From Macrostomum lignano (lineage: Eukaryota), in the NCBI GenBank assembly GCA_002269645.1, contig NIVC01002036.1, positions 146,404-210,403 of the forward strand: a DNA stretch of 64,000 nucleotides, written 5' to 3'. Below the pieces are notes generated by a model. The model had not been told where the DNA came from. It made no database searches and saw only the letters and a program-made list of their open reading frames with translations. Below, in pieces: positions 1 to 58,100 of this stretch. The position numbers were made by a program, and so were the translations under genes. Position 1 is the stretch's first letter. Every line of letters begins with the position of its first letter.

Positions 1-1345
1 AGATAGATATCCATCTGCATGCCTACTTATCCATCTGCACTTATCCATCTGCATGCCTACTTATCCATCTGCATGCCTTACTTATCCATCTGCACTTATC
101 CATCTGCATGCCTACTTATCCATCTGCATGCCTTACTTATCCATCTGCACTTATCCATCTGCATGCCTACTTATCCATCTGCACTTATCCATCTACATGC
201 CTACTTATCCATCTGCATGCCTACTTATCCATCTGCACTTATCCATCTGCATGCCTACTTATCCATCTGCACTTATCCATCTGCATGCCTACTTATCCAT
301 CTGCACTTATCCATCTACATGCCTACTTATCCATCTGCATGCCTACTTATCCATCTGCATGCCTGCTTATCCATCTGCATGCCTGCTTATCCATCTGCAA
401 GCCTACTTATCCATCTGCATGCCTACCCATCCATCTTCATGCCTACCTAACCTTCCTGCCTACCCATCTATCTTCCTGCCTACCCATCTATCTTCATGCC
501 TACCCATCTATCTTCCTGCCTACCCATCTATCTTCCTGCCTACCCATCTATCTTCCTGCCTACCCATCTATCTTCCTGCCTACCCATCTATCTGCATGCC
601 TACCCATCTATCTTCCTGCCTACCCATCTATCTGCATGCCTACCCATCTATCTGCATGCCTACCCATCTATCTGCATGCCTACCCATCTATCTGCATGCC
701 TACCCATCTATCTGCATGCCTACCCATCTATCTGCATGCCTACCCATCTATCTGCATGCCTACCCATCTATCTTCATGCCTATCCATCTACCTTCCTGCC
801 TACCCATCTATCTGCATGCCTACCCATCTATCTGCATGCCTACCTATCTATCTGCATGCCTACCCATCTATCTTCATGCCTACCCATCTATCTTCATGCC
901 TATCCATCTACCTTCCTGCCTACCCATCTATCTGCATGCCTACCCATCTATCTGCATGCCTACCCATCTATCTTCCTGCCTACCCATCTATCTGCATGCC
1001 TACCCATCTATCTTCCTGCCTACCCATCTATCTGCATGCCTACCTATCTATCTGCATGCCTACCCATCTATCTTCATGCCTACCCATCTATCTTCCTGCC
1101 TACTCATCTATCTTCCTGCCTACCCATCTATCTTCATGCCTACCCATCTATCTTCATGCCTATCCATCTACCTTCCTGCCTACCCATCTATCTTCATGCC
1201 TACCCATCTATCTAGAAGCCTACACAACTATTTACATTCCTTCTCATCTATCTTCCCGTCTATCTGCCTACCAATCCATCTATCTGCATTATTATCCACC
1301 TGTCTACATGCCGACTCATCTATCTACATGCCAATCTATCTATTA
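1..1345. repeat. Compound minisatellite: ~1-420 ACTTATCCATCTGC(ATGCCT) 14/20-bp units, then ~421-1210 20-bp TACCCATCTATCT(G/T)C(A/C)TGCC units, then a degenerate tail
   Basis: Periodicity is directly visible. The array lies in the intron downstream of the centriolin-like exon ending at 1399 and runs off the window start. Confidence 0.97.
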
Positions 1346-36320: not shown

Positions 36321-37083
36321 CTAGCAATCTACGCCCCCCGTTGGGGAGCCAAAGAAATGCATTTAAATTCTTTAAATGTAGCTCGTTACATTATCTAGGG
36401 AATTTATAATTTCAAAAACTGATTCGGTGTAAAATGCTTTTGATATTAGTCAAATATTAGTATCCATGCCCAACCTTAAAGGTACGCCATGTCTTCACTG
36501 GAGTCTGCACTCCAGCTGCAATATTGAGAGAAAGAGGCGCATTCAAGATCGTCACTGAACTGCGCAGTGGCGAACGCAAAACCTGCAATCTGATGTTTCC
36601 ATTGCTGCGAGCTCTGCTGCACTCCACAGTTTAAATTTCCAGATGAAAATATTTTTGTTTTATCATTTCTGGCAAACAGTTAACTAGATGGCCTTCGTAC
36701 TTCAACTAATTATTCTGAAAAGCATTTAGCACAGGAGAAAAGACAGAAAAGTTCTTCGTAAAAATAATGTACGCGTCCTAATTTTAGATCCACTGTTTAC
36801 GGCATACTTGCACTGAGGGTGCAGTAAATTGGGGTTGACAAAACTAAGCAAGCCAATTGTACACTATCAGAGTACTCTTGGCTTGTAGGCAACGCGTACC
36901 ACAATAAAATGCTCATTCCAAACTGGAAGTACGCCACTCAGTTTGCAAAATATTGTAGCTTGAGGAAGCCGTTCATGATTTTTATTGTTCTCTCACCTCA
37001 AGCATAAATAGAGTAGTTGTCCCGTGCTCATTGCAAACGTTTCTGCTTGAGCTGCTCACTCTATCTTAGGTTAAATTTAAAAA

Positions 37084-40000
37084 ATGCAATCCGACGCCAA
37101 TGCAGAGACTCGGACTTCATCAGTTCGCAAGTGGCTGCATGAGCAGAACAGTCCAGAAGAGATCAGAGACCCGGCTACCGGATGGACTCAACTTCATTCG
37201 GCAGTGTGGCGCAATGAAATTGAAACGGTTCGCTCCCTGATCGAAGCCATGGCTGATGTCGATGCAACCACAACAAACGGATCAACGGCCGTGCACTTGG
37301 CTGTTCGCCGAGGTCATCTGCAAGCTCTGCGCTTGCTGATGGCAGCTCAGGCGGATTCAAGCCTCGCAACATTGTCCGGCGAGACCCCAGTGACCGAGGC
37401 TGCTGCCCTGTGCAATTCCGAGATGGTGCAGCTCCTCCTATCCGAGCTCTGCCCTGTATCGGAGATGCAACTAAACTTGTCGCTATTCACAGCCGCCCTC
37501 AACTGCGATTTAAGTGCTGCGGTGGCTCTAGTACAGGCCGGGGCGGACTTGAACTTTCAAACAGCCGTTTGTTTTCCGGTTGGCAATGTTGGTCGTCTTC
37601 AGGCAAGCAATAATCGCCGAGAACGAGCTATCAACTCCGCGGGAAACACTATCCTTCAAGCTGCCGTTTTGGGTGGCAGTCCTTCGGTAGTCAGCTTATT
37701 GGTAGCCAACATGACCGATGTCGATCTTGCAAACGATGACGGGATATCAGCACTGCAAAATGCGGTGCTGGTTGGAAACGCCGAACTTGTTTCGATTCTG
37801 CTGGCAGCTCAAGCCAGTGCGAATGCCAAAGATTCGATTGGCTGGTCGGCGCTCAGCGTCGCTGCAGAAGATGGACTTGATAATATCGTTGCAGCTCTTA
37901 TCGCTAGCAACAGCTCGGTTGATAGGTGCAACAATCGTCAATTGACTCCTCTCCACTACGCTTCGCAGAATGGGCACTTGACTGTGGTGAAGGCGCTAAT
38001 TAAGGCCGGAGCAAACATTCAGTGCTCAGACAGCAACCAATCGACACCCCTACACAGTGCAGCGATGAGTGGACACGCCAAAGTCGTGGCCGTCCTAATT
38101 TCCGCCGGGGCCGATGTCAACAGTCCTGATTCGAGTGGAGATTCGCCAATTTTCATGGCAGCTCAGCACGGCTACGATCGCATTGTATCGCTGCTGATAG
38201 AAAATGGTGCATACGTCGACATGCAAGAGAACGCAGGCGATTCGCCTTTGCAGTTCGCAGCTAATCACGGCCACGCTGACGTCGTGTCGATGCTGATCGA
38301 ATCTGGGGCAGAAATCGATCTTAGGGAAAGCATCGGTTGGACCGCCTTGCACGTTGTTTCCCAGCAGAGCAAAGCCGCAGTTGCCGAAGTGCTGATCAAG
38401 GCCGGCTGTCAAATTGACATTCGCGAATTTGATGGATGGACTCCGCTTCACGTGGCCATGCTGCAAGGCGGGCCAACTGATGTTGTTGCTAAGCTTATTG
38501 AAGCAGGGGCCAATGTAGAACTTGTTGACAAAGATGGCTGGTCACCTCTTCACTTTGCTGCAGCATTTGGCCAGTTTCACCTCATCGAGCTCTTCTGGAA
38601 TCCGAAGACTTGTCAGACAGCTGCTGGTTCCTGTCGGCAGGACATCGAATTCCGCGACGAATTTACTGATGAGGCGACAGAGGACAGGCAACTCTCAGTC
38701 AAACTGTCCTCCGCCATGTCTGATGCGGGATTCAACCAAGCAGCAGCCACTTTACAGGTGGGCTCAGGCGCGGTTCTTCAAGACCTGATCAGGCTGAGGT
38801 GCGAGTGCAGGGACTTCTTCGTCTTTGGAAGCTTTGCCGACGGTTGGGGCAGCAGTCTGACGGGAATCGATGGTCGGATCGATGACGACTCAGACATCGA
38901 CATTACAAGAATTTTGGCCGGAACAAAGCTGCATATTGTCAGCTCGCTTGACTCGGACAGCAACGCCACCTGCCCTAACGAATGCACACCGGTTCGTTAC
39001 GAGAATGGACATGTCGAGTTTCTCATCAATGGTGAGCTTATTGAATTCTCCTAAAGTCCCCAACCACTCTACGTTGTATCAAACTTTTCAACTCCATACA
39101 CGGATAGATTTTTGTGCTCTCAGCACCCAGCTCCCAAGCACCCAGCTACAGCTCTTGCCCTTGGGTCTCATTCAGGAGCTCCCGTCCCACCTCCGTAGTA
39201 TAGCATCAGGGAGCAGCAGGAGCTACTCACGCTTGCCCGGTAACCAAACCAATCAGTCATGCGAACTCTTAGCAAGCCGGTTCTAGCTGTTGGCATGAGG
39301 ATGAGACCCTCGGCATTTATTCTCAGCCTCAGACAGTAATGAATGGGGCTGCAAAAGAAAAATGCCAGAATTCACTACACCAGTTTTACAGCAGCTGGCA
39401 ATTATGGAACGTTTCGAAATGTAACAATACTAGCTAACTCCCACCATCACTTCAGTTACGAGGCCAAATCAAATGAACGAGGGATCGCCCTTGTGCCCCG
39501 CAATCGATGAGATTCGAGCCCACCCGTGCTGCAACTACCCACCAGTGCAGGTGCTGCAGCCCTCCTATCGGTCTCGCATGCCAGACGTTATGCTTGAGGC
39601 CTTGCGCGGCTGCCTGCAAAACTCGGAGTGCCATGCAGTCTCGGCCTCACCGCCGGGAATGGCTGGCAGCCGCATGCGCGTCAGCACCACGCATCTCGAG
39701 CGAGCAGTGATGCAGCGTCTCTCCACTGTTCAAGGACAGCTGTTTATCGTCTTAAAGTACCTCATCAAGAAAGTGATAGCAAAGCAAGCCACTGGAATAA
39801 AGACCTACCATGCTAAAAACCTGCTTTTCTATATGCTCGACGAGACTCCGAAAGAGCTCTGGAAGCCAGAAAACTTGCTGCTGCTAGTTCGACTGTCACT
39901 ACAGCTGTTGCAAGAGGGTCTCCGAACGGTGACGCAGAGTAGGAGCGAGTGCATGAGGCACTTCTTCCTGCGGGACGCCGCAGTGTACTTGCGCGGCGAT

Positions 40001-40852
40001 CACCAGTCCAAAGAGGTGATCAGTCGCGTGGTGACAGGTGTGCTGTCAGATTTGCCGGACCTGCTCGCAAAGTACAAAAGTATTCTGCGAATCCAAGCCT
40101 CGGGCGGCGTGATCAGGTTTCACCCTTTCACGATTCTCATCTCAACATCCGACACGTCTTCTTATTTGGACGAAGCAATCGAACTGCCGTGCCACAGAAT
40201 TTACCCCATCATCAAGCGCGTGATTGCGGAACTGGCTAAAGATGCTGCCGACATGGAGGCTGAATCACAAAATATCGTGGAGAATTTAATCAACAGATTA
40301 TCAGATTGTGCCAGAACGACAAGGGAATGCCTGAGAGCCCTGATGTGTCTGAAATTCGGACTGCCATTGCGCTTGGATGCTGAAGTAAGCCTCCAGTGTG
40401 GCAGTCGAGACATTCACTGTCCACGTGACCAACCCCTATCTGTTGATGAAGCAAAAGTGCTAATTTGGAATCACCTTCAAAGCACCGACTCTGCCGTGAA
40501 ATTCTGCTTCAAGTTTAACGAAAAGCCGGTCTTCGAATTTCTGCCCTGCCACATCAGTGAAGCTTTCCCAGCTCCAACTTACTCCTATACGAACTACTTC
40601 TATGTGAACTTCGACGCACTGATGAAGACTTTGCAGCTGGAGTTCGGCTTGAGCAGTCCAAGCAGTCGTGCTGCTCTGTTTGAAGAACTGCTCAACAGCA
40701 GCGAGCCTGACACACAGGAGCTTCAGATGGCGCTGAACTACTGCCAGGACGATGAGCTGCTGGTCCGCCTGGTGCACAAGCACAGAGACTGCATCGCTGC
40801 CAGCAGACTTTTTGACGAGTTCCTTCGAGAGTACAAGTCTCGGGTAAGCTGA
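37084..40852 (+). CDS. Ankyrin-repeat / Mab21-cGAS-like nucleotidyltransferase (cGLR) fusion protein, 2 exons, 1114 aa
   Basis: Exon 37084-39031 (AATG|gtgagc) and exon 39456-40852 (cacttcag|TT) join in phase 1 (3345 nt). About 13 ankyrin repeats are followed by the NTase motif GSFADGWG...DDDSDIDIT. Exon 2 has AIDEIRAHPCC, CHAV, RVSTTHLE, QLFIVLKYLIK, KTYHAKNLLFYMLD..W..ENL and RHFFL, typical of Mab21/cGAS C-lobes. Confidence 0.85.
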
Positions 40853-41735
40853 AGCTAAAGCCTCAGTTGCACCTGCCATTTGTAAAGCTCATCTGTGCCG
40901 CTCCTGTTTCAGATTGGAATGCTAACAACTTGCGAAAGACTCGCCTTTTCTGCGCTGGGAAGATCTGTGCCTATGCAGGTAAGCGAAATGATTCGATCAT
41001 TTTTGCCTGTTTTGATGCAGTTGTCAACCTTGAATCTGCATTGTCAGCCTGTAATTTGCAGCATCTGCACCAACTGGAGACTTCTGAGTCAGAGGATTCG
41101 AGATGATGTGAGAGCGACATTGTCCAAACAGTTACCTGTATTCATAACTTCTTCTGTTTCAACTGTACTCGCATCTTCTACGGTAGTCTGCTGTAGTGGG
41201 CAGCACAAAAACCTTTGTTCCAGGAAGAGCCAGAAACCATTGATGCACTGATTAACTGGTAGAGTTTGTTTTAAGTCTCTCACTTGTCCTGTAATTATTC
41301 ATTTTTTAATAAATATGAGCTACCAGTCATCATCTTCAGTTCTTCAGGCAGTTTACAATTTGCCAAAACCAACTGGCCTCTTTTTCCTTAAATTATTCAA
41401 AGCATTTTTTCTGTATGCACTTTCAACAACTGCATTAAGGTTTAAAAACGAGCTGAATTACATAAAAACTTTAGCAGCACTTGAAGTTAAAGCGAGTCAT
41501 AATTTTTAGAAGACACTCATGTACTGAGGAGCTGAGGTTGCGCAATATATTTAGCGAAATTGCTCGAACATTGCGCGCGTGTTGTTCTATTTTTACAATT
41601 TTTGCTCAAGCAGAAAGGCATGCAAAGCGAATTCTAGGTGCGTCAAACTTCTCAAGTTTCTAGTTGCCAGACTTGAACTCATCGCAAGTTCGCACAATAT
41701 AGCAGAGTGAGACGGCGGTGCCAAAGTCGCCGAGC

Positions 41736-44700
41736 TCAGTAGACTCTAAGATTGCACATTGCCGATGGCGGAGCACCGGCTGAGCCTGGGCTGGCCACCG
41801 TCCCGCCCGTGCTCGCCTCGATGTAGATGAACCGACCGTACATTGGCTTGCCGCAGGCAACCATTATGCTCTGAGGCTGCGGATTGTGATTGGCTAGTTT
41901 TGAACCATAGACAAAAATTGTTTGGGGCTCTCAAATTGCGTGCATTTAAAGCTTGTGCCAAGCAGAGTGAGTGGACAGACAAGTTGAGTGGACAGACAGG
42001 TTGAGTAGACCGACAGGTTGAGTGGACAGACAGGTTGAGTGAACAGACAGGTTGAGTTGACAGACAGGATGAGGTGGACAGACAGACATACACAGAGTGA
42101 ACGGATAGAGTGAACATATGGTTACAGAATGAGTGGGAATAAACAGAATGAACATGCGGATACAGGGTGAGCAGACAGGCACAGGGTGAGCAGACAGGCA
42201 CAGGGTGAGCAGACAGGCACAGGGTGAGCAGACAGGCACAGGGTGAGCAGACAGACACAGGGTGAGCAGACAGGCACAGGGTGAGCAGACAGACACAGGG
42301 TGAGCAGACAGACACAGGGTGAGCAGACAGGCACAGGGTGAGCAGACAGGCACAGGGTGAGCAGACAGGCACAGGGTGAGCAGACAGGCACAGGGTGAGC
42401 AGACAGGCACAGGGTGAGCAGACAGACACAGGGTGAGCAGACAGACACAGGGTGAGCAGACAGGCACAGGGTGAGCAGACAGGCACAGGGTGAGCAGACA
42501 GACACAGGGTGAGCAGACAGGCACAGGGTGAGCAGACAGACACAGGGTGAGCAGACAGACACAGGGTGAGCAGACAGGCACAGGGTGAGCAGACAGGCAC
42601 AGGGTGAGCAGACAGGCACAGGGTGAGCAGACAGGCACAGGGTGAGCAGACAGACACAGGGTGAGCAGACAGACACAGGGTGAGCAGACAGACACAGGGT
42701 GAGCAGACAGACACAGGGTGAGCAGACAGACACAGGGTGAGCAGACAGACACAGGGTGAGCAGACAGACACGCAGGCAGCATACCCGATCGTGCGGAGGC
42801 GCTCCGGCGCCAGCGCCAGCCTGATCAATCCCGCACAGAAACTTTCTCGCCCCGATCCTGCGCCTGCGCGACCGGCCAGACTTGATCACCTGGCGCGATC
42901 TCCTCGCCACGTACACCTCCAGTCTTCGCTGCGGACCGGCCAGGGTGCCGTCTGTGAAGAAATTAAAGTTTAATGAACACCCTGACTGAGACTCAGGCAT
43001 TTGGCCTCGTCCTCTGCAGTCTGTTGTCTGTCAACCCTCTTGAAACACATGCACTCTAATCCGTTTTGAAAGCCCTACAATTGAGTATAACATAAATATA
43101 AGAACAAAACGCAGATATTCCTACTGGCCGTGAGTAGTACACCCTGTACTAGCATCTTCAATCGTAGATCGACCAGCCATCCCACGACAGACGCGTCGGG
43201 CGACACCTGCACGCAGCCGTTGCCGATGGTGTCGGTTTTGTCCCAGCTGGTGATTCCGTCGGGACTGTCGGCGACTTGCCGCCTCCGGTGCTTGACGCCG
43301 CCGGCAGCGGCGTCGCTGCCCATCCAGGTCGGCTTGTTGAAGGCCAGGTTGGCCAGGCAGCGGCTGGAGTTGCTGACGCGGAAGAAGGCGCCGCCGCCGC
43401 CGCTGGCGCACGAGTCCGTCTGGTGGCAGCCGAGGACGTCAACTCGCATGGCGATACCGCCGTGCCAGTCCACCGGGTGGAAGCGGACGTAGCGGGCGGT
43501 GAAGGGCCGGTACAGGTAGTGCACCCGCTCGCTGTTCCGATTGTGATTTCCGCGGAACAGCTGCGGGTTGGTGCGGCAACACAAAAGCAGAAATTAAAGC
43601 CTTTTAGTGGCCACTTCATCGTGTCCTACCTGCTCCCACTTGCACAAGATGACAGTGTCAATATCCTTGGCATCATCGGTGCAGTATGGGGGCCAGCAGA
43701 GCCAAGCAGAAGAAACGAAAGTCTTTTGATCGCTTTTAGTGCGAGTGCAGTTCAAATGCGAAGTCGAATGTTGCCAGAGTTGCGGCAAAGATAAAATATG
43801 GAAGCGAGTTTGGGCGCGAGCGAATCGCCCACGACTGCAACACTCGAATCGCTACATGGCCTCTTTATCTCGCAATAACCATTAAGCCAGAGATATTCGA
43901 GTCCCCCCAAGCCTGTCGAAGTACTCTATCGAAGAGCTTAATGACGCCTCGAAAGCAGCAATAGGAATGCGAAGAAATGTAATGGACCATCATTAGACTG
44001 CGAAATGATAGCTAAAATGGCTGCGAGTAAAATTGTCTACTTTCTGTTCTATCCTCATCTGCTGGCCTCGCCCTGGCGTCTTTGGGATCATCCGAATTGG
44101 CGGTGGAATGTCGCCGAACTTTGCCTTGCCTTGCGCCGTCATTTACCCCCGCTTCTCCTCTCCTTATCGATGCTTCCGGCCGGCCGTGTTTGCATTTTTA
44201 ACTTGTTGCACGCTGCCCCCGAGCGCATAACGGATTGCGCAAATGCGTAGCGGCCAGTCTTCGAGAAATCCGTGCGCTCTCCTATTGGCATGCACGGAAT
44301 CCGCTAATGGGGGAGACAGAGATGAAGATGCCGACCGATATTCATGTCGCATAGCCCGATCGAGGTTCGCCTTGCCAGCGTGAGAGCCGCGCGCGGCCCT
44401 CAATGCAAGCTGCTGCTGCTGCGGCAGATGCGACAATGATTCTAAGTGGGCGGCCCCGCGCGTTGTGCCAGACGTTCGGGATCATAACTGCATAGCCAAC
44501 CGCTTGCCTTGTGGTCTGTTTATGAACTGCATGTCTGCTGTCCATTCGATAGCTATAAAAATGAAGCCGCTGCTTTAAACATTTTTCTTAAGCAACCGTT
44601 TACCTTGGGCATTAGATGGTTCGCGTCTTTATACAGGGCCCACGACAGTCCGTCGTTGCTGTAGGCAACTCTGTAAGACGTCACCCAGGTGTCCTTCCTG

Positions 44701-47700
44701 CCATCGCCGCGTCCTTTTGTCACCAAGCCGGTAACTCTAGCGGGCGGGCCGAGGTCCACCTCCAGCCACTGCTCGCCTAAAATCCGTGGTCGGGGGTGGG
44801 TGGCGGCTCTGTTCGAGCTGGCTGCACAGTTTTGGTACCCGAGTTCCGCTGCCGCACTAATTCCCACGCCTCCAATTGTTGCTGCCATGATTTGCCATGA
44901 TTTGCCATGATTTGCTGCCAACCGGCATAGTGGCAAGCTTGGGGCTCGTTTTGCATTTTCTCCACTGCCTGTACCCTACCTGTAACCTGCCTGCAACCTA
45001 CACCTGTAACCTGCCTGCAACCTACACCTGTAACCTGCCTGTAACCTGTCTGCAACCTACACCTGTAACCTACCTGTAACCTGTCTGCAACCTACACCTG
45101 TAACCTGCCTGTAACCTGTCTGCAACCTACACCTGTAACCTGCCTGTAACCTGTCTGCAACCTACACCTTTAACCTACCTGTAACCTGTCTGCAACCTAC
45201 AACCTACACCTTTAACCTACCTGTAACCTGCCTGCAACCTACACCTGTAACCTTCCTGTAACCTGCCTGCAACCTACACCTGTAACCTTCCTGTAACCTG
45301 CCTGCAACCTACACCTGTAACCTGCCTGTAACCTGCCTGCAACCTACACCTGTAACCTGCCTGTAACCTGTCTGCAACCTACACCTGTAACCTGCCTGTA
45401 ACCTGTCTGCAACCTACACCTTTAACCTACCTGTAACCTGTCTGCAACCTACAACCTACACCTTTAACCTACCTGTAACCTGCCTGCAACCTACACCTGT
45501 AACCTTCCTGTAACCTGCCTGCAACCTACACCTGTAACCTTCCTGTAACCTGCCTGCAACCTACACCTGTAACCTACCTGTAACCTACTTAGCACTATAC
45601 CTATTGGTGTAGTGCTAAGTCCAGCCCAGTTTCCATCGCAACAAAAACATTGTAAAGTCACTCACTGTTCACCCGCTTGGCGCACCAGGCCTTGCTAGTG
45701 AACAGGTGTCCGTACGAAGCGTCGCAGGTTCGCATTGCACGCCGACCGCGAGAGCTGGAGGCCGTCAACCGAGCGAACGGCGGCTGAGCCAGCGACTTCT
45801 TGCAGGCTGTCGGCAGTCAGTATGATCGGGTTGATGTCATTAGTGTTCGCCTTCACTGTACTTCACTCTGGACTCATTCATATTTCAAATGGATCCTAGT
45901 GATGCCGACTCATTACAGCATTGATTCTGGTGCACTACGGCATTGATGCTGGTTCATTACAGCCCTGATGCTGGTTCATTACAGCATTGATGCTGGTTCA
46001 TTGCAGCCCTGATGCTGGTTCATTACAGCACTGATGCTGGTTCATTACAGCACTGATGCTAGTTCATTACAGCACTGATGCTGGTTCATTACAGCACTGA
46101 TGCTGGTTCATTACAGCCCTGATACTGGTTCATTACAGCCCTGATACTGGTTCATTACAGCCCTGATACTGGTTCATTACAGCCCTGATGCTGGTTCATT
46201 ACAGCCCTGATGCTGGTTCATTACAGCACTGATGCTGGTTCATTACAGCACTGATGCTGGTTCATTACAGCCCTGATGCTAGTTCATTACAGCCCTGATA
46301 CTGGTTCATTACAGCATTGATGCTGGTTCATTACAGCCCTGATGCTGGTTCATTACAGCCCTGATGCTGGTTCATTACAGCACTGATGCTGGTTCATTAC
46401 AGCACTGATGCTGGTTCATTACAGCACTGATGCTGGTTCATTACAGCACTGATGCTGGTTCATTACAGCCCTGATGCTAGTTCATTACAGCCCTGATACT
46501 GGTTCATTACAGCCCTGATGCTGGTTCATTACAGCATTGCAGGCAAAGATACCGGTCCCCAGTAATCCCAAAAGTATTCGTTATTTTAAGATACGACTTT
46601 TTATGCCCGCCTTTGCCTGGGAGCCAAATAATATCCTTAGAAATGCACTTGAAAAAGCAGCAATTTTATCGGCCAGACTGGCAAAGCAGCGCACAGGGCT
46701 TGCCAGTTCAGCCTTGATAATAAAGTCGCAGTCTCCTGCATCGGACTTGCGCAGTCCGATAAGTTGAACCGAGACTTGACTGCGCGCAATCCCATAATTG
46801 GGACAGCCGGGGCTGGCGATTATTACGGGTCTGTAATCTAGCAGTTATAACAAAACAGCAAACTGCCACTGCTGGCGAGCTCACGCTGGCAGCCCAGCAG
46901 CTCCACTCGCATGCTGGGATGGCGGTGAAACTGCAGCGGCTGCAGCCTCACGAACTCGGCCGAGAACGGCCGCTGGAAGAGATTGTGCTTCACCGAATAC
47001 GAGTCCACGTTGCCTTCGAAAATCTGGAAGTTCAGTTGAATTTGACGCCATCAGTGCAAGAGGGCAGCATAAGGATGGGAGAGAGCGGCATTGGCCTGCC
47101 ACCTTCGGCTTCTCACCTTCGGCCTGCCAGCCTCGTCCAGCACGGTCCGCCAGCTTATGGCGTCGCTGCTGTAGTTCACGGCGAACGCGGTGACCCACTC
47201 CTTGCCGTCGCCGCGGCCCTGGGTCATGACCCCCGTCACCGTGGCCTCCGTGCCCAGCGCGATCTGCAGCCACTCGCTGCGGCTGTTGAACTGCGGGCAC
47301 CAGGCCCTCCCGTCACGGCCGTAGAGTCGCGCGTGATGCCCCTGGCAACCGGCGCCCCGAGAGAATTTCTCCGGGAAGCTGGACGAAGCCGTCACCTGCC
47401 AGTCGCGGATTTCGCCCGAAATCATGCCGAGTGGCCCGTCCTGGTTGCCGCAATGGCCGGCGGGGCTGCCTGCTGTGGGATTGGGAGGAAAAATTCAACT
47501 GATCTGCATTAGCTGGTATTGTATCTGCAATAGCTGGTATTGAATCTGCAACAGCTGATATTGAATCTGCAACAGCTGGTATTGTATCTGCAATAGCTGG
47601 TATTGAATCTGCAACAGCTGATATTGAATCTGCAACAGCTGATATTGAATCTGCAATAGCTGGTATTGAATCTGTAACAGCTGGTATTGAATCTGCAACA

Positions 47701-47997
47701 GCTGATATTGAATCTGCAACAGCTGATATTGAATCTGCAACAGCTGATATTGAATCTGCAACAGCTGGTATTGAATCTGCAACAGCTGGTATTGAATCTG
47801 CAACAGCTGATATCGAATCTGCAACAGCTGGTATTGAATCTGCAACAGCTGGTATTGAACTAACTTGAACTAACTGAACTAAAATTGACTTATCGTCCTA
47901 GTGGGATGCTCAGCAACCAAAAAAGCAGTTTATTACCGTGAGCAATGCAGAGAAGACTCAACGCAGTCAGAAGCTGCGCTGCAATCGAATGCCTCAT
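41736..47997 (-). CDS. Secreted protein with two F5/8 type C (discoidin) domains and a C-terminal F-type-lectin-like domain, 8 exons, ~537 aa
   Basis: Exons 47997-47937 (signal peptide MRHSIAAQLLTALSLLCIAHG), 47472(or 47469)-47117, 47023-46885, 45806-45666, 44776-44604, 43560-43125, 42951-42785 and 41876-41736 all have GT-AG ends and are phase-consistent (1614 nt). Discoidin motifs: WLQIALG..VTGVMTQGRG, RVELLGC, WLEVDLG..VTGLVTKGRG, RVDVLGC. Lectin-like motifs: NLAFNKP...WLVDL...GRFIYI...CNLRVY. Confidence 0.88.
41960..42775. repeat. 19-bp minisatellite (ACAGGGTGAGCAGACAG(G/A)C) x ~32 with a degenerate 5' part, in the last intron of the discoidin gene
   Basis: Visible 19-bp period from ~42165. 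Confidence 0.95.
44965..45586. repeat. Compound AACCT-based minisatellite (CACCTGTAACCTGCCTGCAACCTA, 24/35-bp variants) in discoidin intron 4
   Basis: Visible repetition, ending directly at a hairpin (45587-45620). Confidence 0.93.
45935..46540. repeat. 22-bp minisatellite (GCCCTGATGCTGGTTCATTACA) x ~27 in discoidin intron 3
   Basis: Visible 22-bp period. Confidence 0.95.
47500..47870. repeat. 21-bp minisatellite (CTG(G/A)TATTGAATCTGCAACAG) x ~17 in discoidin intron 1
   Basis: Visible 21-bp period. Confidence 0.95.
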
Positions 47998-48039
47998 TGT
48001 ACCAATAAATTTTTTCAATTACTTTATTGCGCTCTTTCT

Positions 48040-48185
48040 TCAGCTGCAGCTTCGCAGGTGAATAAAATCGCTGGAGTTCGCTGAGGTGGCCTCCGGGGAC
48101 CCGCCCCCGTATTTATGGGCCGCCTTGGTGCTGCATGGTGACACGGCCGGCGCGCCCTGCAGCCCTCGGCCAGCCAATCAGCGAC
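48040..48185 (-). promoter_or_regulatory. Candidate core promoter of the discoidin gene
   Basis: On the minus strand, ATTGG (inverted CCAAT, ~48173-48177), a TATA-like CATAAATA (~48108-48115) and a GC box GGGGCGGG precede the ATG at 47997 by ~100-180 bp. This is motif-level evidence only. Confidence 0.4.
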
Positions 48186-48451
48186 TCTCAAAATCCGACT
48201 TTCACTGCCATTAGGGCCGGCATTGAATGCGAAGAATCAAACTGACCTGACATGTTCAATCAGGCCGGCCATCAGTTCCGCTTGAGAGCTTGAAAGTTTT
48301 CCACTTTGGAAACAATTGGGGGCTGTTAGGGATAAAAGGGTCAGCGCAATCTGACAATTATCCCAATGACTGCTGCTGCTTTTTAGAACATTGCTGCTTC
48401 ATCGATGTTGCTGCGAGATTTTCTGGGTTAACTTTATGCATCTGCTGTCGG

Positions 48452-48453
48452 TG

Positions 48454-48550
<97 letters not shown>

Positions 48551-48633
48551 TAGTGTCTGTCTGTCTGTCTGTCTGTCTGTCTTAGTGTCTGTCTGTCGGT
48601 GTGTCTGTCTGTCTTAGTGTCTGTCTGTCTTAG

Positions 48634-48714
<81 letters not shown>

Positions 48715-48717
48715 TAG

Positions 48718-48790
<73 letters not shown>

Positions 48791-48805
48791 TAGTGTCTGT
48801 CTGTA

Positions 48806-48894
<89 letters not shown>

Positions 48895-48917
48895 TAGTGT
48901 CTTTCTGTCTGTCTGTT
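48452..48917. repeat. (TCTG)n microsatellite with GTCTTAGTG interruptions
   Basis: Directly visible. Confidence 0.97.
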
Positions 48918-49156
48918 TTAAGAAATTTGAAGACTGAAGAATACAATAAATTAATTTAAAATGATGAACTTTTTCATGTACATTAAAAAGCTGGTGTTGC
49001 ACCGACAGCACAGCTGCGAGAGCGCAGTAATTTACAGTGTCAAATGAAGTTCATGTTGCAATGCTACAAAACTATCAGGAACATTCTTAACTCAGAGCAA
49101 AATATAAACTTCTGATGAAAGTCCCAGTCTCGGTTGCTCGGGCATGGCGGTCGAAG

Positions 49157-50430
49157 TCACAGGTAGAAGGAAGCCGAGCTGTCGGGCTCCGCATCCCAGC
49201 CGCAGCCGCTGCAGCACCTGTCGGTGGGGCTGGAGCCGAAGTCCAGACGGTCGAGAGCATCGAGGTTCAGCTGCTGCTCGCTGGCGCCAAAGTCGTCGAA
49301 GGCGTTGCGGATTCGCTCTCTGGAGGTGCACATGGCGTGCATGCAGTTCTCGGTGCTGCAGTCTGCAGGCAGCGGGATTCAAGTGTCTGTATATGGCTGT
49401 CTTGGTGTCTGTATATGGCTGTCTTGGTGTCTGTATGTGGCTGTCTTGGTGTCTGTATATGGCTGTCTTGGTGTCTGTATGTGGCTGTCTTGGTGTCTGT
49501 ATATGGCTGTCTTGGTGTCTGTATATGGCTGTCTTGGTGTCTGTATATGGCTGTCTTGGTGTCTGTATATGGCTGTCTTGGTGTCTGTATATGGCTGTCT
49601 TGGTGTCTGTATATGGCTGTCTTGGTGTCTGTATATGGCTGTCTTGGTGTCTGTATATGGCTGTCTTGGTGTCTGTATATGGCTGTCTTGGTGTCTGTAT
49701 GTGGCTGTCTTGGTGTCTGTATGTGGCTGTCTTGGTGTCTGTATGTGGCTGTCTTGGTGTCTGTATGTGGCTGTCTTGGTGTCTGTATGTGGCTGTCTTG
49801 GTGTCTGTATGTGGCTGTCTTGGTGTCTGTATGTGGCTGTCTTGGTGTCTGTATATGGCTGTCTTATTGTCTGTATATGGCTGTCTTGGTGTCTGTATGT
49901 GGCTGTTTTGTGTCTGTATATGGCTGTTTTGTGTCTGTATGTGGCTGTCTTGGTGTCTGTATGTGGCTGTATTAGTCTGTCTTTCTGTCTCTCTAGCAGT
50001 CTTCGTGTCCACCTGTCTATCGTTTATCCTAGTGCCTTTGCTATTGAACAGAACGGTAGATAAGTTTATAAAGCAAATGGTTTAAGACATGAATCATTGA
50101 GGACCGAGTTTTGGATAAAATCTCTGAGAGGTCCCGAGCTCGCACCCCCTCAGCCGGCTCACCCGTCATCCAGGCGGTGCCGAAGTCGTACAGCCGCTGC
50201 TGCTGAGCGGCCCCGTCAACCCGGCACTGCAGCAGCTGGTGGCTGGAGACCCGGTGCAGGCTGGCCCAGGACCGGTGCCCGGAGGACCCGCCCGATTGCG
50301 CCTCACGGCACCCGTCCGGCTCGATGCTTCGCCGACGGAAATTCCACGGAATTGCCGGCTGGTGCGACTTCCGGGTCTGCCTGGCCTTGGACCGGCTTTG
50401 CTTGCGGGGCCGGCTGTGCGCGCAGCCCAT
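49157..50430 (-). CDS. Candidate 2-exon gene, 157 aa, unknown function (MGCAHS... N-terminus); may be the 3' end of a larger gene
   Basis: Exon 50430-50163 (ACG G|gtgagc) and exon 49362-49157 (cctgcag|AC TGC) join in phase 1 (474 nt including stop). The exons are GC-rich and flank a minisatellite intron. No recognisable domain. Confidence 0.45.
49382..49975. repeat. 22-bp minisatellite (AT(A/G)TGGCTGTCTTGGTGTCTGT) x ~27
   Basis: Visible 22-bp period; fills the intron of the candidate gene. Confidence 0.95.
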
Positions 50431-50747
50431 TGAGAGCTCTGCTACTAGTTGAACCGCTTGCCTCGCTGCCTTTCCGTTCCTGACCGTTTTGAGTCCCCAG
50501 TTTGAGTTGACAGAATTTCCCAAGAATTTATGACTTCTTGGGTCAGAGTGAAAATCGATACAAGAATTTCAGTTGCGGGCGCTGATCAGCTGCGCCCCGC
50601 GTGACCGGCGGCTCTCGCGATCCGCCCCAGCCCCGACTCGCGGTGGAAGCCACCCGATTGGCGAAACCTTTGTTTGCTTTCTCATCAGCTTGTGCCAGCA
50701 CTGATTCAATACGTTGTCGCTATGCTTTGCTGCTCATTCAGTCACGT

Positions 50748-51836
<1,089 letters not shown>

Positions 51837-52432: not shown

Positions 52433-53922
52433 CGAATGGGCAAATGTACTCCTGCCGGCATGCGACTTGGGCCGCTCAGCTGGGCCGGGCGGCTGCTGGG
52501 CTGCGGTGGGCGGCTGCTCAGCTGATCCGGGCTGTGACGCATCGGTCTGAGTAGAGAAATTGCAGTTATTGGTAGAGACAGGGCAGAATGGTAGAGACAG
52601 GGCAGTTATTGGTAGAGACAGGGCAGTTATTGGTAGAGACAGGGCAGAATGGTAGAGACAGGGCAGTTATTGGTAGAGAAAGGGCAGAATGGTAGAGACA
52701 GGGCAGAATGGTAGAGACAGGGCAGAATGGTAGAGACAGGGCAGAATGGTAGAGATAGGGCAGAATGGTAGAGACAGGGCAGTTATTGGTAGAGACAGGG
52801 CAGAATGGTAGAGACAGGGCAGTTATTGGTAGAGAAAGGGCAGAATGGTAGAGACAGGGCAGAATGGTAGAGACAGGGCAGAATGGTAGAGACAGGGCAG
52901 AATGGTAGAGACAGGGCAGAATGGTAGAGAAAGGGCAGAATGGTAGAGACAGGGCAGAATGGTAGAGACAGGGCAGTATGGTAGAAACAGGGCAGAATGG
53001 TAGAGACAGGGCAGAATGGTAGAGACAGGGCAGAATGGTAGAGACAGGGCAGAATGGTAGAGACAGGGCAGAATGGTAGAGACAGGGCAGAATGGTAGAG
53101 ACAGGGCAGAATGGTAGAGAAAGGGCAGAATGGTAGAGACAGGGCAGTATGGTAGAGACAGGGCAGAATGGTAGAGACAGGGCAGAATGGTAGAGACAGG
53201 GCAGAATGGTAGAGACAGGGCAGAATGGTAGAGACAGGGCAGAATGGTAGAGACAGGGCAGAATGGTAGAGACAGGGCAGAATGGTAGAGAAAGGGCAGA
53301 ATGGTAGAGACAGGGCAGTATGGTAGAGACAGGGCAGAATGGTAGAGACAGGGCAGAATGGTAGAGACAGGGCAGAATGGTAGAGACAGGGCAGAATGGT
53401 AGAGACAGGGCAGAATGGTAGAGAAAGGGCAGAATGGTAGAGACAGGGCAGAATGGTAGAGACAGGGTAGAATGGTAGAGACAGGGCAGAATGGTAGAGA
53501 CAGGGTAGAATGGTAGAGACAGGGCAGAATGGTAGAGACAGGGTAGAATGGTAGAGACAGGGCAGAATGGTAGAGAAAGGGCAGAATGGTAGAGACAGGG
53601 CAGTATGGTAGAGACAGGGCAGAATGGTAGAGACAGGGCAGAATGGTAGAGACAGGGCAGAATGGTAGAGACAGGGCAGAATGGTAGAGACAGGGCAGAA
53701 TGGTAGAGACAGGGCAGAATGGTAGAGACAGGGCAGAATGGTAGAGAAAGGGCAGAATGGTAGAGACAGGGCAGTATGGTAGAGACAGGGCAGTTATTGG
53801 TAAAAATATTGCTCTTCACCTTCACTTACCATTAACTGGAATCGATCAGACGCGGCGAGCTCTTTCTCAAACGACTTTTGCCGCTTAGCGACGTCATAGC
53901 ATTTGCCTTTGCGGCTTATCAG
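52433..53922 (-). CDS. Two candidate internal phase-0 exons of an unknown gene (53922-53830 and 52546-52433)
   Basis: aaaacag|LISRKGKCYDVAKRQKSFEKELAASDRFQLM|gtaagt and tactcag|TDASQPG...STFAHS|gtgact. Both are open and multiples of 3, and they flank the 19-bp array as an intron. Start and end of the gene were not found. Confidence 0.4.
52565..53800. repeat. 19-bp minisatellite (GGTAGAGACAGGGCAGAAT) x ~65 with recurring variants
   Basis: Visible 19-bp period. Variants GAAAGGG, GCAGTAT, GCAGTTATT and GGTAGAAT recur in blocks. Confidence 0.97.
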
Positions 53923-55101
53923 CTGTTTTATGAACTCCAATTGTTTGGACATTTGGGTTAATTTATTGAAAAAATGAAATTAATTGACAAATAGAAATCT
54001 GGCTTTTTGAAAGGCCAACTGAAGTCCCATTTTATATGAAGCGGCAGTTTGACATCAACAAGTTCACTCTAATTTTCATTGGTTCGGAATGGGGTGGTCA
54101 AAATATTTCACGTTCATAGTACGTGTCAAATCCACTATGCTTTTAGACTCGAAGGGGTGGACTGCTTCATTTCAGTAGTGACTCATTTTGACACCAAATT
54201 ACTTTGATTCAAAATGAAACATGCGCATTAACCAGCATGAAACATACATTAGGTACAATATGCCCCACTCACATTCACAGCCTCATTCACAGCCTCATTC
54301 ACTGCCTCATTCACAGCCTCACAGCCAGACTCACTGATCGACCCTAATCCAGTTTGGGTTTCGAATACTCAGTTATTTCTGCATTTTCAATTCATTGAGT
54401 AGCTCTGTGAGATCCGCTGCTGTCAATATACAGTGGGCAGTGGATAACAAATAAATGACACACAATGAATTGGATAGGAATTAAATGAATGATGCAAAAT
54501 AGAAATTCGAGAAATAGATTAAATATGCAAGAAAAAGACGTATATGCTCAAAAATTAGGATGAAGTCAGTCATCAACAAATCAAAGAGTAGATAAAATTT
54601 CTCTTTGGTGACTAAATAAAGTTTACAATTTTACATATTTGGAACTGCTTGACACTATTCTTTACGATAATGGCGCAATCATAAGTTTGGTGCAACAAAT
54701 TTGCTTAGATAGGTGTCTTCCACCATGAACCACCCATCACTGTCACCGAGCATTGCGCAATCTTGAGCATACCCAGAGCACGTATTTGCTTTTAAGCAAT
54801 CGTGAGAACTGCGATTCTTATCTTTACTCAAAATCCAGCTACAGTGGAAAGATCGAGAAAAGCGCGAAACACACCTCCAAACAAACCGCTGTGCATAATA
54901 CAAAACAATATATAGATAAAAAGTGGAACGCTCACAGCAGGTGACCAAACCAAAAGTAAAAGCAAAGCCCAATTGTATTTTGATAAAAAGCCATTACTAA
55001 AGAAGCTGGCGAAATATTTCTGAGCTAACCTGTCAATATCAAGTATAAGTTAAAATGTACGAGCGCAGTAAATTCAAACATGGATTTAAACTATAGCGGC
55101 G

Positions 55102-58100
55102 CTGTCAATATATAGAATTAAATGGAGAGCTTAGAAATGACACTCAATGGGGCTGATATACACAGGTGCAAAGATGACGCAGAGCCCGCTACTCTCAGCA
55201 TCTCTAACTAGCCCTGTCGCTGTCAATATATAGAATTAAATGGAGAGCTTAGAAATGACACTCAATGGGGCTGATATACACAGGTGCAAAGATGACGCAG
55301 AGCCCGCTACTCTCAGCATCTCTAACTAGCCCTGTCGCTGTCAATATATAGAATTAAATGGAGAGCTTAGAAATGACACTCAATGGGGCTGATATACACA
55401 GGTGCAAAGATGACGCAGAGCCCGCTACTCTCAGCATCTCTAACTAGCCCTGTCGCTGTCAATATATAGAATTAAATGGAGAGCTTAGAAATGACACTCA
55501 ATGGGGCTGATATACACAGGTGCAAAGATGACGCAGAGCCCGCTACTCTCAGCATCTCTAACTAGCCCTGTCGCTGTCAATATATAGAATTAAATGGAGA
55601 GCTTAGAAATGACACTCAATGGGGCTGATATACACAGGTGCAAAGATGACGCAGAGCCCGCTACTCTCAGCATCTCTAACTAGCCCTGTCGCTGTCAATA
55701 TATAGAATTAAATGGAGAGCTTAGAAATGACACTCAATGGGGCTGATATACACAGGTGCAAAGATGACGCAGAGCCCGCTACTCTCAGCATCTCTAACTA
55801 GCCCTGTCGCTGTCAATATATAGAATTAAATGGAGAGCTTAGAAATGACACTCAATGGGGCTGATATACACAGGTGCAAAGATGACGCAGAGCCCGCTAC
55901 TCTCAGCATCTCTAACTAGCCCTGTCGCTGTCAATATATAGAATTAAATGGAGAGCTTAGAAATGACACTCAATGGGGCTGATATACACAGGTGCAAAGA
56001 TGACGCAGAGCCCGCTACTCTCAGCATCTCTAACTAGCCCTGTCGCTGTCAATATATAGAATTAAATGGAGAGCTTAGAAATGACACTCAATGGGGCTGA
56101 TATACACAGGTGCAAAGATGACGCAGAGCCCGCTACTCTCAGCATCTCTAACTAGCCCTGTCGCTGTCAATATATAGAATTAAATGGAGAGCTTAGAAAT
56201 GACACTCAATGGGGCTGATATACACAGGTGCAAAGATGACGCAGAGCCCGCTACTCTCAGCATCTCTAACTAGCCCTGTCGCTGTCAATATATAGAATTA
56301 AATGGAGAGCTTAGAAATGACACTCAATGGGGCTGATATACACAGGTGCAAAGATGACGCAGAGCCCGCTACTCTCAGCATCTCTAACTAGCCCTGTCGC
56401 TGTCAATATATAGAATTAAATGGAGAGCTTAGAAATGACACTCAATGGGGCTGATATACACAGGTGCAAAGATGACGCAGAGCCCGCTACTCTCAGCATC
56501 TCTAACTAGCCCTGTCGCTGTCAATATATAGAATTAAATGGAGAGCTTAGAAATGACACTCAATGGGGCTGATATACACAGGTGCAAAGATGACGCAGAG
56601 CCCGCTACTCTCAGCATCTCTAACTAGCCCTGTCGCTGTCAATATATAGAATTAAATGGAGAGCTTAGAAATGACACTCAATGGGGCTGATATACACAGG
56701 TGCAAAGATGACGCAGAGCCCGCTACTCTCAGCATCTCTAACTAGCCCTGTCGCTGTCAATATATAGAATTAAATGGAGAGCTTAGAAATGACACTCAAT
56801 GGGGCTGATATACACAGGTGCAAAGATGACGCAGAGCCCGCTACTCTCAGCATCTCTAACTAGCCCTGTCGCTGTCAATATATAGAATTAAATGGAGAGC
56901 TTAGAAATGACACTCAATGGGGCTGATATACACAGGTGCAAAGATGACGCAGAGCCCGCTACTCTCAGCATCTCTAACTAGCCCTGTCGCTGTCAATATA
57001 TAGAATTAAATGGAGAGCTTAGAAATGACACTCAATGGGGCTGATATACACAGGTGCAAAGATGACGCAGAGCCCGCTACTCTCAGCATCTCTAACTAGC
57101 CCTGTCGCTGTCAATATATAGAATTAAATGGAGAGCTTAGAAATGACACTCAATGGGGCTGATATACACAGGTGCAAAGATGACGCAGAGCCCGCTACTC
57201 TCAGCATCTCTAACTAGCCCTGTCGCTGTCAATATATAGAATTAAATGGAGAGCTTAGAAATGACACTCAATGGGGCTGATATACACAGGTGCAAAGATG
57301 ACGCAGAGCCCGCTACTCTCAGCATCTCTAACTAGCCCTGTCGCTGTCAATATATAGAATTAAATGGAGAGCTTAGAAATGACACTCAATGGGGCTGATA
57401 TACACAGGTGCAAAGATGACGCAGAGCCCGCTACTCTCAGCATCTCTAACTAGCCCTGTCGCTGTCAATATATAGAATTAAATGGAGAGCTTAGAAATGA
57501 CACTCAATGGGGCTGATATACACAGGTGCAAAGATGACGCAGAGCCCGCTACTCTCAGCATCTCTAACTAGCCCTGTCGCTGTCAATATATAGAATTAAA
57601 TGGAGAGCTTAGAAATGACACTCAATGGGGCTGATATACACAGGTGCAAAGATGACGCAGAGCCCGCTACTCTCAGCATCTCTAACTAGCCCTGTCGCTG
57701 TCAATATATAGAATTAAATGGAGAGCTTAGAAATGACACTCAATGGGGCTGATATACACAGGTGCAAAGATGACGCAGAGCCCGCTACTCTCAGCATCTC
57801 TAACTAGCCCTGTCGCTGTCAATATATAGAATTAAATGGAGAGCTTAGAAATGACACTCAATGGGGCTGATATACACAGGTGCAAAGATGACGCAGAGCC
57901 CGCTACTCTCAGCATCTCTAACTAGCCCTGTCGCTGTCAATATATAGAATTAAATGGAGAGCTTAGAAATGACACTCAATGGGGCTGATATACACAGGTG
58001 CAAAGATGACGCAGAGCCCGCTACTCTCAGCATCTCTAACTAGCCCTGTCGCTGTCAATATATAGAATTAAATGGAGAGCTTAGAAATGACACTCAATGG

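Follow-up and report, generated by a model that had tools for sequence, protein, structure and literature searches.

A Macrostomum lignano gene very probably encoding an ankyrin-fused member of the cGAS-like receptor family

The locus described here lies on the forward strand of the window, the 64,000-nt stretch of Macrostomum lignano DNA that was analysed, and is a single intact spliced gene (Table 1). A sequence-only reading had proposed that a phase-1 intron joins two large open reading frames into one protein of 1114 residues ending at position 40852. The junction is borne out by canonical GT-AG borders, by the junction peptide FLIN/VTRPNQ, which is matched exactly in gene models P0001, P0002 and P0306, and by paralog P0004 (37% identical), where intron 1 has a counterpart that agrees with it in both alignment position and phase (L003:11334-11413). 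Splicing does open a frame of 1114 residues, but the proposed end was premature, as two further exons carry the protein to 1148 residues and the gene to position 41106. Translated, the four exons match GenBank PAA61404.1 (1148 aa; BOX15_Mlig024404g1, annotated as a "hypothetical protein" of Macrostomum lignano) at 100% identity, including the start at the ATG (37084), which is preceded by an in-frame stop at 37078. The frame is intact over all 1148 codons and each of the three introns has canonical splice sites. Exon 3 is possibly a cassette exon; the homeolog model (UniProt A0A1I8GXP2) omits these 66 nt, and equivalent skipping here would yield 1126 residues. The gene is located within a repeat-rich region. 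A tblastn search with 161 family proteins found no further family paralogs in the window outside 37084-41106.

Table 1. Features of the gene, in window coordinates
Feature	Position	Strand	Description or basis
ORF1	37084-39054	+	start-side ORF, found in ORF check
ORF2	39473-40852	+	second large ORF, found in ORF check
Exon 1	37084..39031	+	start codon, ankyrin array, linker, NTase N-lobe up to split codon V650
Ankyrin array, 14 repeats, residues 32-516	37177..38631	+	Pfam Ank_2 E 2.5e-102, Ank E 9.2e-73; 33-aa segmentation
Active-site motif G582-S583 ... D604-x-D606, GSFADGWGSSLTGIDGRIDDDSDID	38827..38901	+	AF2 secondary structure, low-stringency alignment, family conservation
Intron 1	39032..39455	+	424 nt, phase 1, donor GTGAGC, acceptor CTTCAG
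Exon 2	39456..40843	+	remaining NTase core, Mab21 C-lobe, most of C-terminal domain
D667 codon, predicted third catalytic acid (AIDEIRA)	39506..39508	+	placed on hcGAS D319 by hhalign
Mab-21_C (HhH/H2TH-like) region, including K-T-Y-H-A-K	39743..39979	+	Pfam PF20266, 23.6 bits, cut-off 24.1
Family-specific C-terminal alpha/beta domain, from residue ~856	40073..40843	+	runs on into exons 3-4
Intron 2	40844..40912	+	69 nt, GTAAGC...TTTCAG
Exon 3	40913..40978	+	66 nt, 22 aa, IGMLTTCERLAFSALGRSVPMQ; in PAA61404.1, absent from homeolog model A0A1I8GXP2
Intron 3	40979..41061	+	83 nt, GTAAGC...TTGCAG
Exon 4	41062..41106	+	HLHQLETSESEDSR then TGA stop

The encoded protein is cytosolic-looking and runs from an ankyrin array through a nucleotidyltransferase (NTase) core of cGAS/Mab21 fold to a family-specific C-terminal domain. 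About 13 N-terminal ankyrin repeats had been expected; the array is clear in Pfam, and division into the tandem 33-residue repeats that mark ankyrin-repeat proteins gives 14. Repeat number varies among paralogs from 0 to about 22. The C-terminal extension, previously described as helical and about 200 residues long, is present, although it measures about 270 residues and is mixed alpha/beta in an AF2 model built for this domain separately (pLDDT 78, pTM 0.79). Compared with PDB structures this model has no significant match (best E 0.58, TM <0.27). The domain is conserved across paralogs.

Pfam alone is insufficient to classify the protein as Mab21/cGAS-like. Mab-21_C scores 23.2-23.6 bits, just below its 24.1 cut-off, and the Mab-21 N-terminal model has no match on the spliced NTase region. 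Classification instead comes from profile and fold comparison, which confirm the Mab21 C-lobe. The AF2 model (pLDDT 83.2, pTM 0.84) has a bilobal cGAS/Mab21 fold, and of its 56 Foldseek matches against the PDB at E<=1e-3 the best 39 are all cGAS (4k9b_A, E 1.8e-6, TM to target 0.52), with Sp-cGLR1 (8gjy, E 2.3e-5) and MAB21L1 (E 7e-5) also matched; TM to target is about 0.5. The NTase/Mab21 fold anticipated from the letters of the DNA is therefore recovered. Aligned by hhalign with seven known cGLRs, the family profile reaches a probability of 97.7% (E 1.7e-12, 180 columns), which places the protein in the cGLR/Mab21 family by profile homology; against PDB sequences the same profile returned nothing significant, only Sp-cGLR1 at E 0.69. 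An OAS or TUTase identity was rejected, neither being among the best 50 Foldseek matches. Also rejected was an inactive protein of the MAB21L1/2 type, which Fig. 1A of Li et al. 2023 (PMC9980059) presents as a Mab21 fold lacking a predicted functional active site; here the catalytic motif is intact, and cGAS outranks MAB21L1 among the Foldseek matches. Taken together, the gene is very probably an ankyrin-fused member of the cGLR family.

The motif GSFADGWG...DSDID sits at the position first given for it. In the AF2 model GS follows strand 1 and DxD lies at the start of strand 2, as in the secondary structure of cGAS, and G582/S583 and D604/D606 align with hcGAS G212/S213 and E225/D227 in an N-lobe-only alignment that is non-significant (E 0.13). 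The third acidic residue suspected in AIDEIRA proved to be D667, which hhalign pairs exactly with human cGAS D319 in the family alignment. The same alignment pairs RVSTTHLE with R376-L-S-F-S-H-I-E383 and KTYHAK with SSYHVK, matching the R-x-S-x-S-x-x-E and S-Y-H-x-K motifs of cGAS. By sequence alignment the active site is complete (G-[SG], [DE]-x-[DE] and a third [DE]), and the core appears to keep every residue class used by cGAS for catalysis and nucleotide binding. The loop from GS to DxD is longer than in cGAS, with 20 residues from GS to D604 compared with 11 from GS to E225 in hcGAS. The core has a pI of 7.7 (net charge +1.4) and the whole protein a pI of 5.2, so it lacks the basic character of nucleic-acid-sensing cGLRs of the cGAS, Dm-cGLR1 and Sp-cGLR1 type, for which Li et al. 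2023 (PMC9980059) give a pI >8.5. The near-neutral core and acidic whole protein argue against a classical nucleic-acid-binding cGLR.

Human and mouse cGAS share with the window protein the bilobal NTase/Mab21 fold, the catalytic residues and the nucleotide-contact motifs, although sequence identity in the structural alignment from Foldseek is only 12-15%. They differ in that cGAS has about 9 extra residues around the Zn-ribbon segment relative to the M. lignano family alignment, while the window protein has a near-neutral rather than basic core, the longer GS-DxD loop, an added N-terminal ankyrin array and the 270-aa C-terminal domain. Beyond Macrostomum, a profile search finds the closest named relatives among cGLR-type proteins of bivalves (for example Sinanodonta woodiana KAL3855470.1 and Mercenaria mercenaria XP_053407825.1; E 1e-10 to 1e-14). 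These proteins of about 700 aa share the G-S-x-x-E-G ... S-D-x-D flavour and have C-terminal extensions; the homology falls mainly in the Mab21 C-lobe and the beginning of the extension, and sampled bivalve matches are about 700-1000 aa long.

Within M. lignano the gene belongs to a large family, in line with the expanded invertebrate family that had been suggested: at E<=1e-30 there are at least 77 divergent clusters, and the 20 strong matches that were sampled are all M. lignano proteins. At least three N-terminal ankyrin repeats are present in 43 of 79 family representatives. Of 69 family domains, 59 (86%) have the catalytic motif complete. Where a residue is present at the position concerned, G, S, D and D are each conserved in 82-84 of 86 domains, and the third acid position is D in 74 of 83. 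The motif is conserved across paralogs that are only 35-47% identical. Compared with a 98% identical homeolog, residue differences amount to 1.6% in the NTase core, 4.1% in the ankyrin region and 3.7% in the C-terminal domain, making the core the most conserved region between homeologs. Many near-identical gene copies exist in M. lignano. Two paralog clusters are fused to a caspase domain, P0072 (PAA59752.1; Peptidase_C14, E 2.7e-25) and P0085 (PAA93319.1; E 2.8e-27), and in each of them two of the catalytic acids have been lost (GSDNS and GSDNT).

That ankyrin-fused cGLRs might already be catalogued had been raised as a caveat, and such proteins, M. lignano proteins among them, are indeed listed as cGLRs in Li et al. 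2023 (PMC9980059). The M. lignano candidates found there are PAA86972.1 (#89), PAA45980.1 (#90), PAA57558.1 (#91), PAA93208.1 (#92) and PAA68676.1 (#93), together with the ankyrin-bearing PAA67649.1 and PAA58690.1; Table S2 gives Ank_2 domains in four of the M. lignano proteins. PAA57558.1 and our family match P0008 share a 90% cluster. These proteins have in common with PAA61404.1 the G-S-[FY]-x-[DE]-G-W-G ... S-D-x-D and K-T-Y-H-A-K motifs and a C-terminal extension, but they are other paralogs, roughly 35-45% identical to it, and its array of 14 repeats and the precise lengths of its domains set it apart. PAA61404.1 does not appear in the parts of that study's tables that were searched. The same study cloned five of the M. 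lignano paralogs, two of them as ankyrin-less cores, screened them against poly I:C and 45-bp dsDNA (ISD45), and flags none of the five among its 15 active enzymes. This negative screen is compatible with an unknown ligand and also with no cyclase activity. Fig. 4C of Li et al. shows the cnidarian S. pistillata to combine a cGLR core with an ankyrin module in a strongly expanded repertoire as well; its proteins are distant in sequence, and an M. lignano-type C-terminal domain is not known for them. Novelty is accordingly low: the gene is an intact member of a family already catalogued, and a sound candidate immune sensor.

A putative immune role is suggested by family membership and lineage-specific expansion. 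On balance we favour, with moderate confidence, a ligand-triggered, candidate nucleotide second-messenger synthase under ankyrin regulation. Such a cGAS-like receptor would be kept inactive until its ligand is recognised; once activated, it would link NTPs at its G-S / D-x-D / D site with the help of Mg2+ or Mn2+, and the resulting cyclic di- or oligonucleotide would be the second messenger that turns on a downstream receptor. The ankyrin array would most likely serve as the recognition or regulatory module through protein-protein contact, as sensor, auto-inhibitor or scaffold. Points against this mechanism are the E of 0.13 for the alignment of GS and DxD with cGAS, the sub-cut-off Mab-21_C score and the lack of a Mab-21 N-terminal match. 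The pathway context adds another, as the planarian Schmidtea is without cGAS and without STING (PMC13563047). With STING of human and of Ptychodera as queries, word-indexed searches gave deuterostome proteins only, among the matches listed, and a literature search for a Macrostomum STING found nothing. In Li et al. (PMC9980059), S. pistillata has 7 STINGs, and M. lignano is absent from Table S5.

The Mab21 core and ankyrin array could instead form a non-enzymatic signalling scaffold, acting by protein contacts only, for instance by recruiting a kinase or caspase, with no second messenger. We regard this as rather unlikely, though it has a precedent in LvMab21-1/2/3 of the crustacean Litopenaeus vannamei, Mab21/cGAS-family immune proteins that have no ankyrin fusion and were not found to synthesise cGAMP in response to nucleic acid; they bind no nucleic acid, make no cGAMP and directly activate IKK-epsilon, a case of protein-based signalling (PMC12928593). 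P0072 and P0085, which retain the same core with two catalytic acids gone, indicate that the scaffold is usable without catalysis, and the screened paralogs not flagged as active in Li et al. (PMC9980059) fit as well. However, all five motif residues are present in the window gene, as are the R/S/E and Y/H/K motifs for nucleotide contact; the motif is intact in 86% of family domains, and the core is the least changed region between homeologs. That the motif is lost specifically in the caspase fusions further suggests that it matters where it is retained.

Activity of another kind is also conceivable, and we consider it improbable that the protein is an active NTase making linear 2'-5' or 3'-5' oligonucleotides in the manner of OAS, or transferring nucleotides to RNA or protein. 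The G-S-x-x-[DE]-G ... S-D-x-D flavour of its motif, which we take to resemble that of terminal nucleotidyltransferases generally, and the long GS-DxD loop would suit such an enzyme, but Foldseek puts cGAS, cGLR and MAB21L1 first, with OAS and TUTase absent from the best 50, and in Cv-cGLR2, an active enzyme from oyster, the G-S ... S-D-I-D spacing is similar. The repeat-rich surroundings and the many near-identical gene copies would be expected of a decaying, transcribed member of a recent gene-family burst without selected function; this, or a non-immune role, is very improbable given the intact 1148-codon frame with three canonically spliced introns, the sparing of the catalytic core by substitutions relative to the homeolog, and the conservation of the motif across divergent paralogs. 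A broader and more speculative proposal, which we think has only a small chance of holding in full, is that the ANK-cGLR clade forms a repertoire sensing proteins rather than nucleic acids, with variable ankyrin arrays doing the recognising, in a STING-independent, cGLR-based inflammasome-like cell-death pathway. The flatworm lineage concerned has relatives from which cGAS and STING have been lost. Signalling would pass through an unknown second-messenger receptor or by direct caspase assembly, with the C-terminal domain as an oligomerisation or effector-coupling module. A hint of the direct caspase route comes from the caspase-fused paralogs, whose catalytic sites are degenerate.

Should the favoured second-messenger synthase prove active, it would be a flatworm representative among cGLR receptors with a non-nucleic-acid ligand, in a phylum where most species reportedly lost cGLR signalling. 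RNAi and transgenesis are feasible in M. lignano, which makes the family workable for establishing the function of an ankyrin array attached to a cGLR, which messenger is made and, if STING is absent, what receives it. The single locus mainly confirms an existing type of catalogue entry. The more interesting leads are at the level of the family, in the size of its expansion, in the C-terminal domain and in the paralogs that combine a caspase fusion with a degenerate active site, of which P0072 is a compact five-exon gene.

The structure of BOX15_Mlig024404g1 is that of a single four-exon gene. The sequence-only reading had joined two ORFs through a phase-1 intron, and this holds: intron 1 has canonical ends and its removal leaves a single open frame of 1114 codons. 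The junction is supported independently by its peptide (...VEFLIN/VTRPNQ...), which is found in the gene models P0001, P0002 and P0306, by alignment to 35-47%-identical paralogs that runs unbroken across it, and by an intron of equal phase at the equivalent alignment position, eight residues past G-H-V, in the 37%-identical PAA59246.1. The proposed end at 40852, with 1114 aa as the full protein, is incorrect. A GTAAGC donor at 40844, directly past ...EYKSR, leads into two overlooked 3' exons, which bring the protein to 1148 aa. The four-exon translation is 100% identical to GenBank PAA61404.1 (BOX15_Mlig024404g1, UniProt A0A267EKA4, 1148 aa), which is annotated as hypothetical or uncharacterised and nothing more. 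The window is genomic DNA of the free-living flatworm Macrostomum lignano, and the best protein matches are UniProt/GenBank entries of this species at 97-100% identity. The ATG at 37084 is the annotated start, with an in-frame stop two codons 5' of it. Exon 3, included in PAA61404.1, is absent from A0A1I8GXP2, the model of the 98%-identical homeolog. This may reflect cassette-exon use or simply a difference between the annotations.

PAA61404.1 combines an ankyrin array, a nucleotidyltransferase core and a conserved C-terminal domain. Of the roughly 13 N-terminal repeats first counted, the array stands and segmentation corrects the number to 14. Pfam is weak on the core: Mab-21_C reaches 23.2-23.6 bits where 24.1 is the cut-off, and the N-lobe has no match; the proposed Mab21 C-lobe thus falls just under threshold and is instead backed by fold and profile comparisons. 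AlphaFold2, given 17 family sequences, yields a confident model (pLDDT 83.2, pTM 0.84) that retrieves 56 PDB matches with Foldseek at E<=1e-3. cGAS structures fill the top 39 places, with 4k9b_A the best (E 1.8e-6, TM to target 0.52); Sp-cGLR1 (8gjy) and MAB21L1 come next. Profile-profile comparison with seven known cGAS-like receptors (cGLRs) drawn from Li et al. 2023 Table S3 gives a probability of 97.7% (E 1.7e-12); model and profile together confirm the NTase/Mab21 fold. The C-terminal extension described as helical and of about 200 aa is present but is alpha/beta and longer. It models well by itself, but nothing in the PDB resembles it significantly (best E 0.58); some bivalve relatives match its first ~100 residues.

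Positions of features in the window, in the protein and at one paralogous locus
Feature	Position	Strand	Evidence or description
ORF1	37084-39054	+	ORF scan
ORF2	39473-40852	+	ORF scan
Intron 1	39032-39455	+	GTGAGC donor; pyrimidine-rich stretch then CTTCAG; phase 1
Exon 3	40913-40978	+	canonical splice sites; 66 nt in frame, 22 aa
Exon 4	41062-41106	+	canonical splice sites
PAA59246.1 intron	paralog locus L003, donor 11334, acceptor 11413		alignment to window gene
14 ankyrin repeats	residues 32-516		Pfam Ank_2 E 2.5e-102; repeat segmentation
Nucleotidyltransferase core	residues ~550-855		AlphaFold2, Foldseek, profile-profile alignment
C-terminal domain, alpha/beta	residues ~856-1148		separate model, pLDDT 78
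KH RNA-binding ORF, 277 aa	23294-24127	-	Pfam KH_1 E 3.1e-31
Long ORF, 675 aa	11074-13101	-	
Long ORF, 635 aa	20874-22781	+	
Short-period tandem arrays	43-1343, 42162-42771, 44968-46536, 47502-47859		8-35 bp units, up to 90 copies
Short-period tandem arrays	48441-48916, 49383-49970, 50749-51836, 52570-53793		8-35 bp units, up to 90 copies
118-bp satellite	55100-64000 (window end)		75.5 copies, 99% identity

Catalytic and nucleotide-contact residues are retained. In the significant profile alignment (E 1.7e-12) the acidic residue suspected in AIDEIRA, D667, pairs with human cGAS D319, RVSTTHLE with R376-L-S378-F-S380-H-I-E383 and KTYHAK with S434-S-Y436-H-V-K439; the cGAS numbers follow from the construct start and the established cGAS numbering. 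The GS...DxD signature is placed as in cGAS by the model, with G582-S583 after strand 1 and D604-x-D606 at the opening of strand 2. A low-stringency N-lobe alignment, non-significant alone (E 0.13), sets these on G212/S213 and E225/D227. The intervening loop exceeds its cGAS counterpart by about nine residues and bears a D-G-W-G-x-x-L motif conserved in the family. G-S/D-x-D/D is kept in 59 of the 69 family domains that cover all five positions. Residue differences from the homeolog (1.6% in the core, 4.1% in the ankyrin array, 3.7% in the C-terminal domain, 12% in the linker) are few, and their direction fits constraint on the core. Our data support PAA61404.1 as an ankyrin-fused cGLR with an intact predicted active site.

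PAA61404.1 is plausibly a ligand-gated nucleotidyltransferase whose product would be a second messenger; its ankyrin array would then serve as sensor, auto-inhibitor or scaffold. The main rival makes the whole protein a scaffold with no enzymatic activity. In shrimp, Mab21 proteins signal via IKK-epsilon binding and make no cGAMP (PMC12928593), and in two M. lignano paralog clusters the same core, with ankyrin repeats, is fused to a C-terminal caspase (Peptidase_C14; E 2.7e-25 in P0072, PAA59752.1, L004:3001-6651; 2.8e-27 in P0085, PAA93319.1) and has lost two catalytic acids (GSDNS and GSDNT against GSDDD). The P0072 fusion is probably genuine, given a compact five-exon gene with introns of 73-99 nt. 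However, PAA61404.1 and 86% of its family keep the motif, which favours catalysis over a scaffold here. As for the ligand, the predicted pI is near-neutral for the core (7.7) and acidic for the whole protein (5.2), against values above 8.5 that Li et al. (PMC9980059) give for nucleic-acid-sensing cGLRs. In the same study, five M. lignano paralogs (Table S3, #89-93) were cloned and assayed with poly I:C plus 45-bp dsDNA, and the Note column that flags active enzymes is blank for each of them; the 15 enzymes described as active come from insects, anemones, molluscs, hydras and corals. Both the charge and the absence of a flagged response to dsRNA or dsDNA favour a ligand other than nucleic acid. 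The matches listed for two STING queries are all deuterostome proteins and do not bear on M. lignano; absence of both cGAS and STING has been reported for the planarian Schmidtea (PMC13563047).

Ankyrin-fused cGLRs were suspected to be catalogued already, and they are. Li et al. (PMC9980059, preprint of the Cell paper) list about 3,000 cGLRs, 87% of them stand-alone enzymes and some with TPR or ankyrin modules, and give nematodes and most platyhelminths nothing beyond Mab21-like proteins. Table S2 assigns Ank_2 to M. lignano PAA67649.1, PAA58690.1, PAA68676.1 and PAA86972.1, the last two screened as ankyrin-less cores. PAA61404.1 was not found in the accessible parts of these tables; with the kind known and paralogs assayed, the locus is an additional member. 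Its place in an expanded invertebrate family, as first proposed, is borne out by a profile search. Among 1.84 billion representative proteins it finds 469 relatives at E<=1e-3, of which 77 reach E<=1e-30; all 20 strong matches whose source was checked are M. lignano proteins. The closest named relatives outside Macrostomum are bivalve proteins (Sinanodonta, Mercenaria; E 1e-10 to 1e-14), and bivalves hold the largest cGLR repertoires in Table S5 of Li et al. (PMC9980059). Of the 79 representatives whose NTase N-terminus is intact, 43 have at least three N-terminal ankyrin repeats (range 3 to 22) and 26 have none, so the ankyrin-cGLR layout dominates a lineage-specific expansion with variable array length. 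The family-level leads, namely the C-terminal domain without PDB match, the degenerate-site caspase fusions and the STING question, outweigh the locus itself.

Some family models are unusual. P0021 (UniProt A0A1I8GXZ3, 1346 aa) holds two full NTase-Mab21 units separated by ankyrin repeats, and is either two tandem genes that annotation has merged or a multi-cGLR fusion such as Li et al. mention. Members at 41-42% identity lie on two short contigs, one in a 'Kangiellaceae bacterium' MAG bin (L001; GCA_036350755.1, JAZBNS010000776.1, 1065 bp) and one from a metagenome (L002; JGI 3300040779, 1745 bp); these are most likely DNA of an unsampled relative, as eukaryotic contamination of the bin, rather than bacterial genes.

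No second family member was found in the window. The KH ORF is probably an exon of an adjacent gene, and the other two long ORFs match no Pfam family at E<=0.01. Base composition is uniform across the last 9 kb. Dense tandem arrays flanking the gene yield long spurious ORFs on both strands, such as 41746-43000 (-). A0A1I8JPX6 (P0019, 'HTH La-type RNA-binding domain-containing protein') maps piecewise to 42800-50443 (+), 3' of the cGLR gene, and is also 77% identical to 12% of the cGLR query; it therefore looks like a chimeric model of two adjacent genes.
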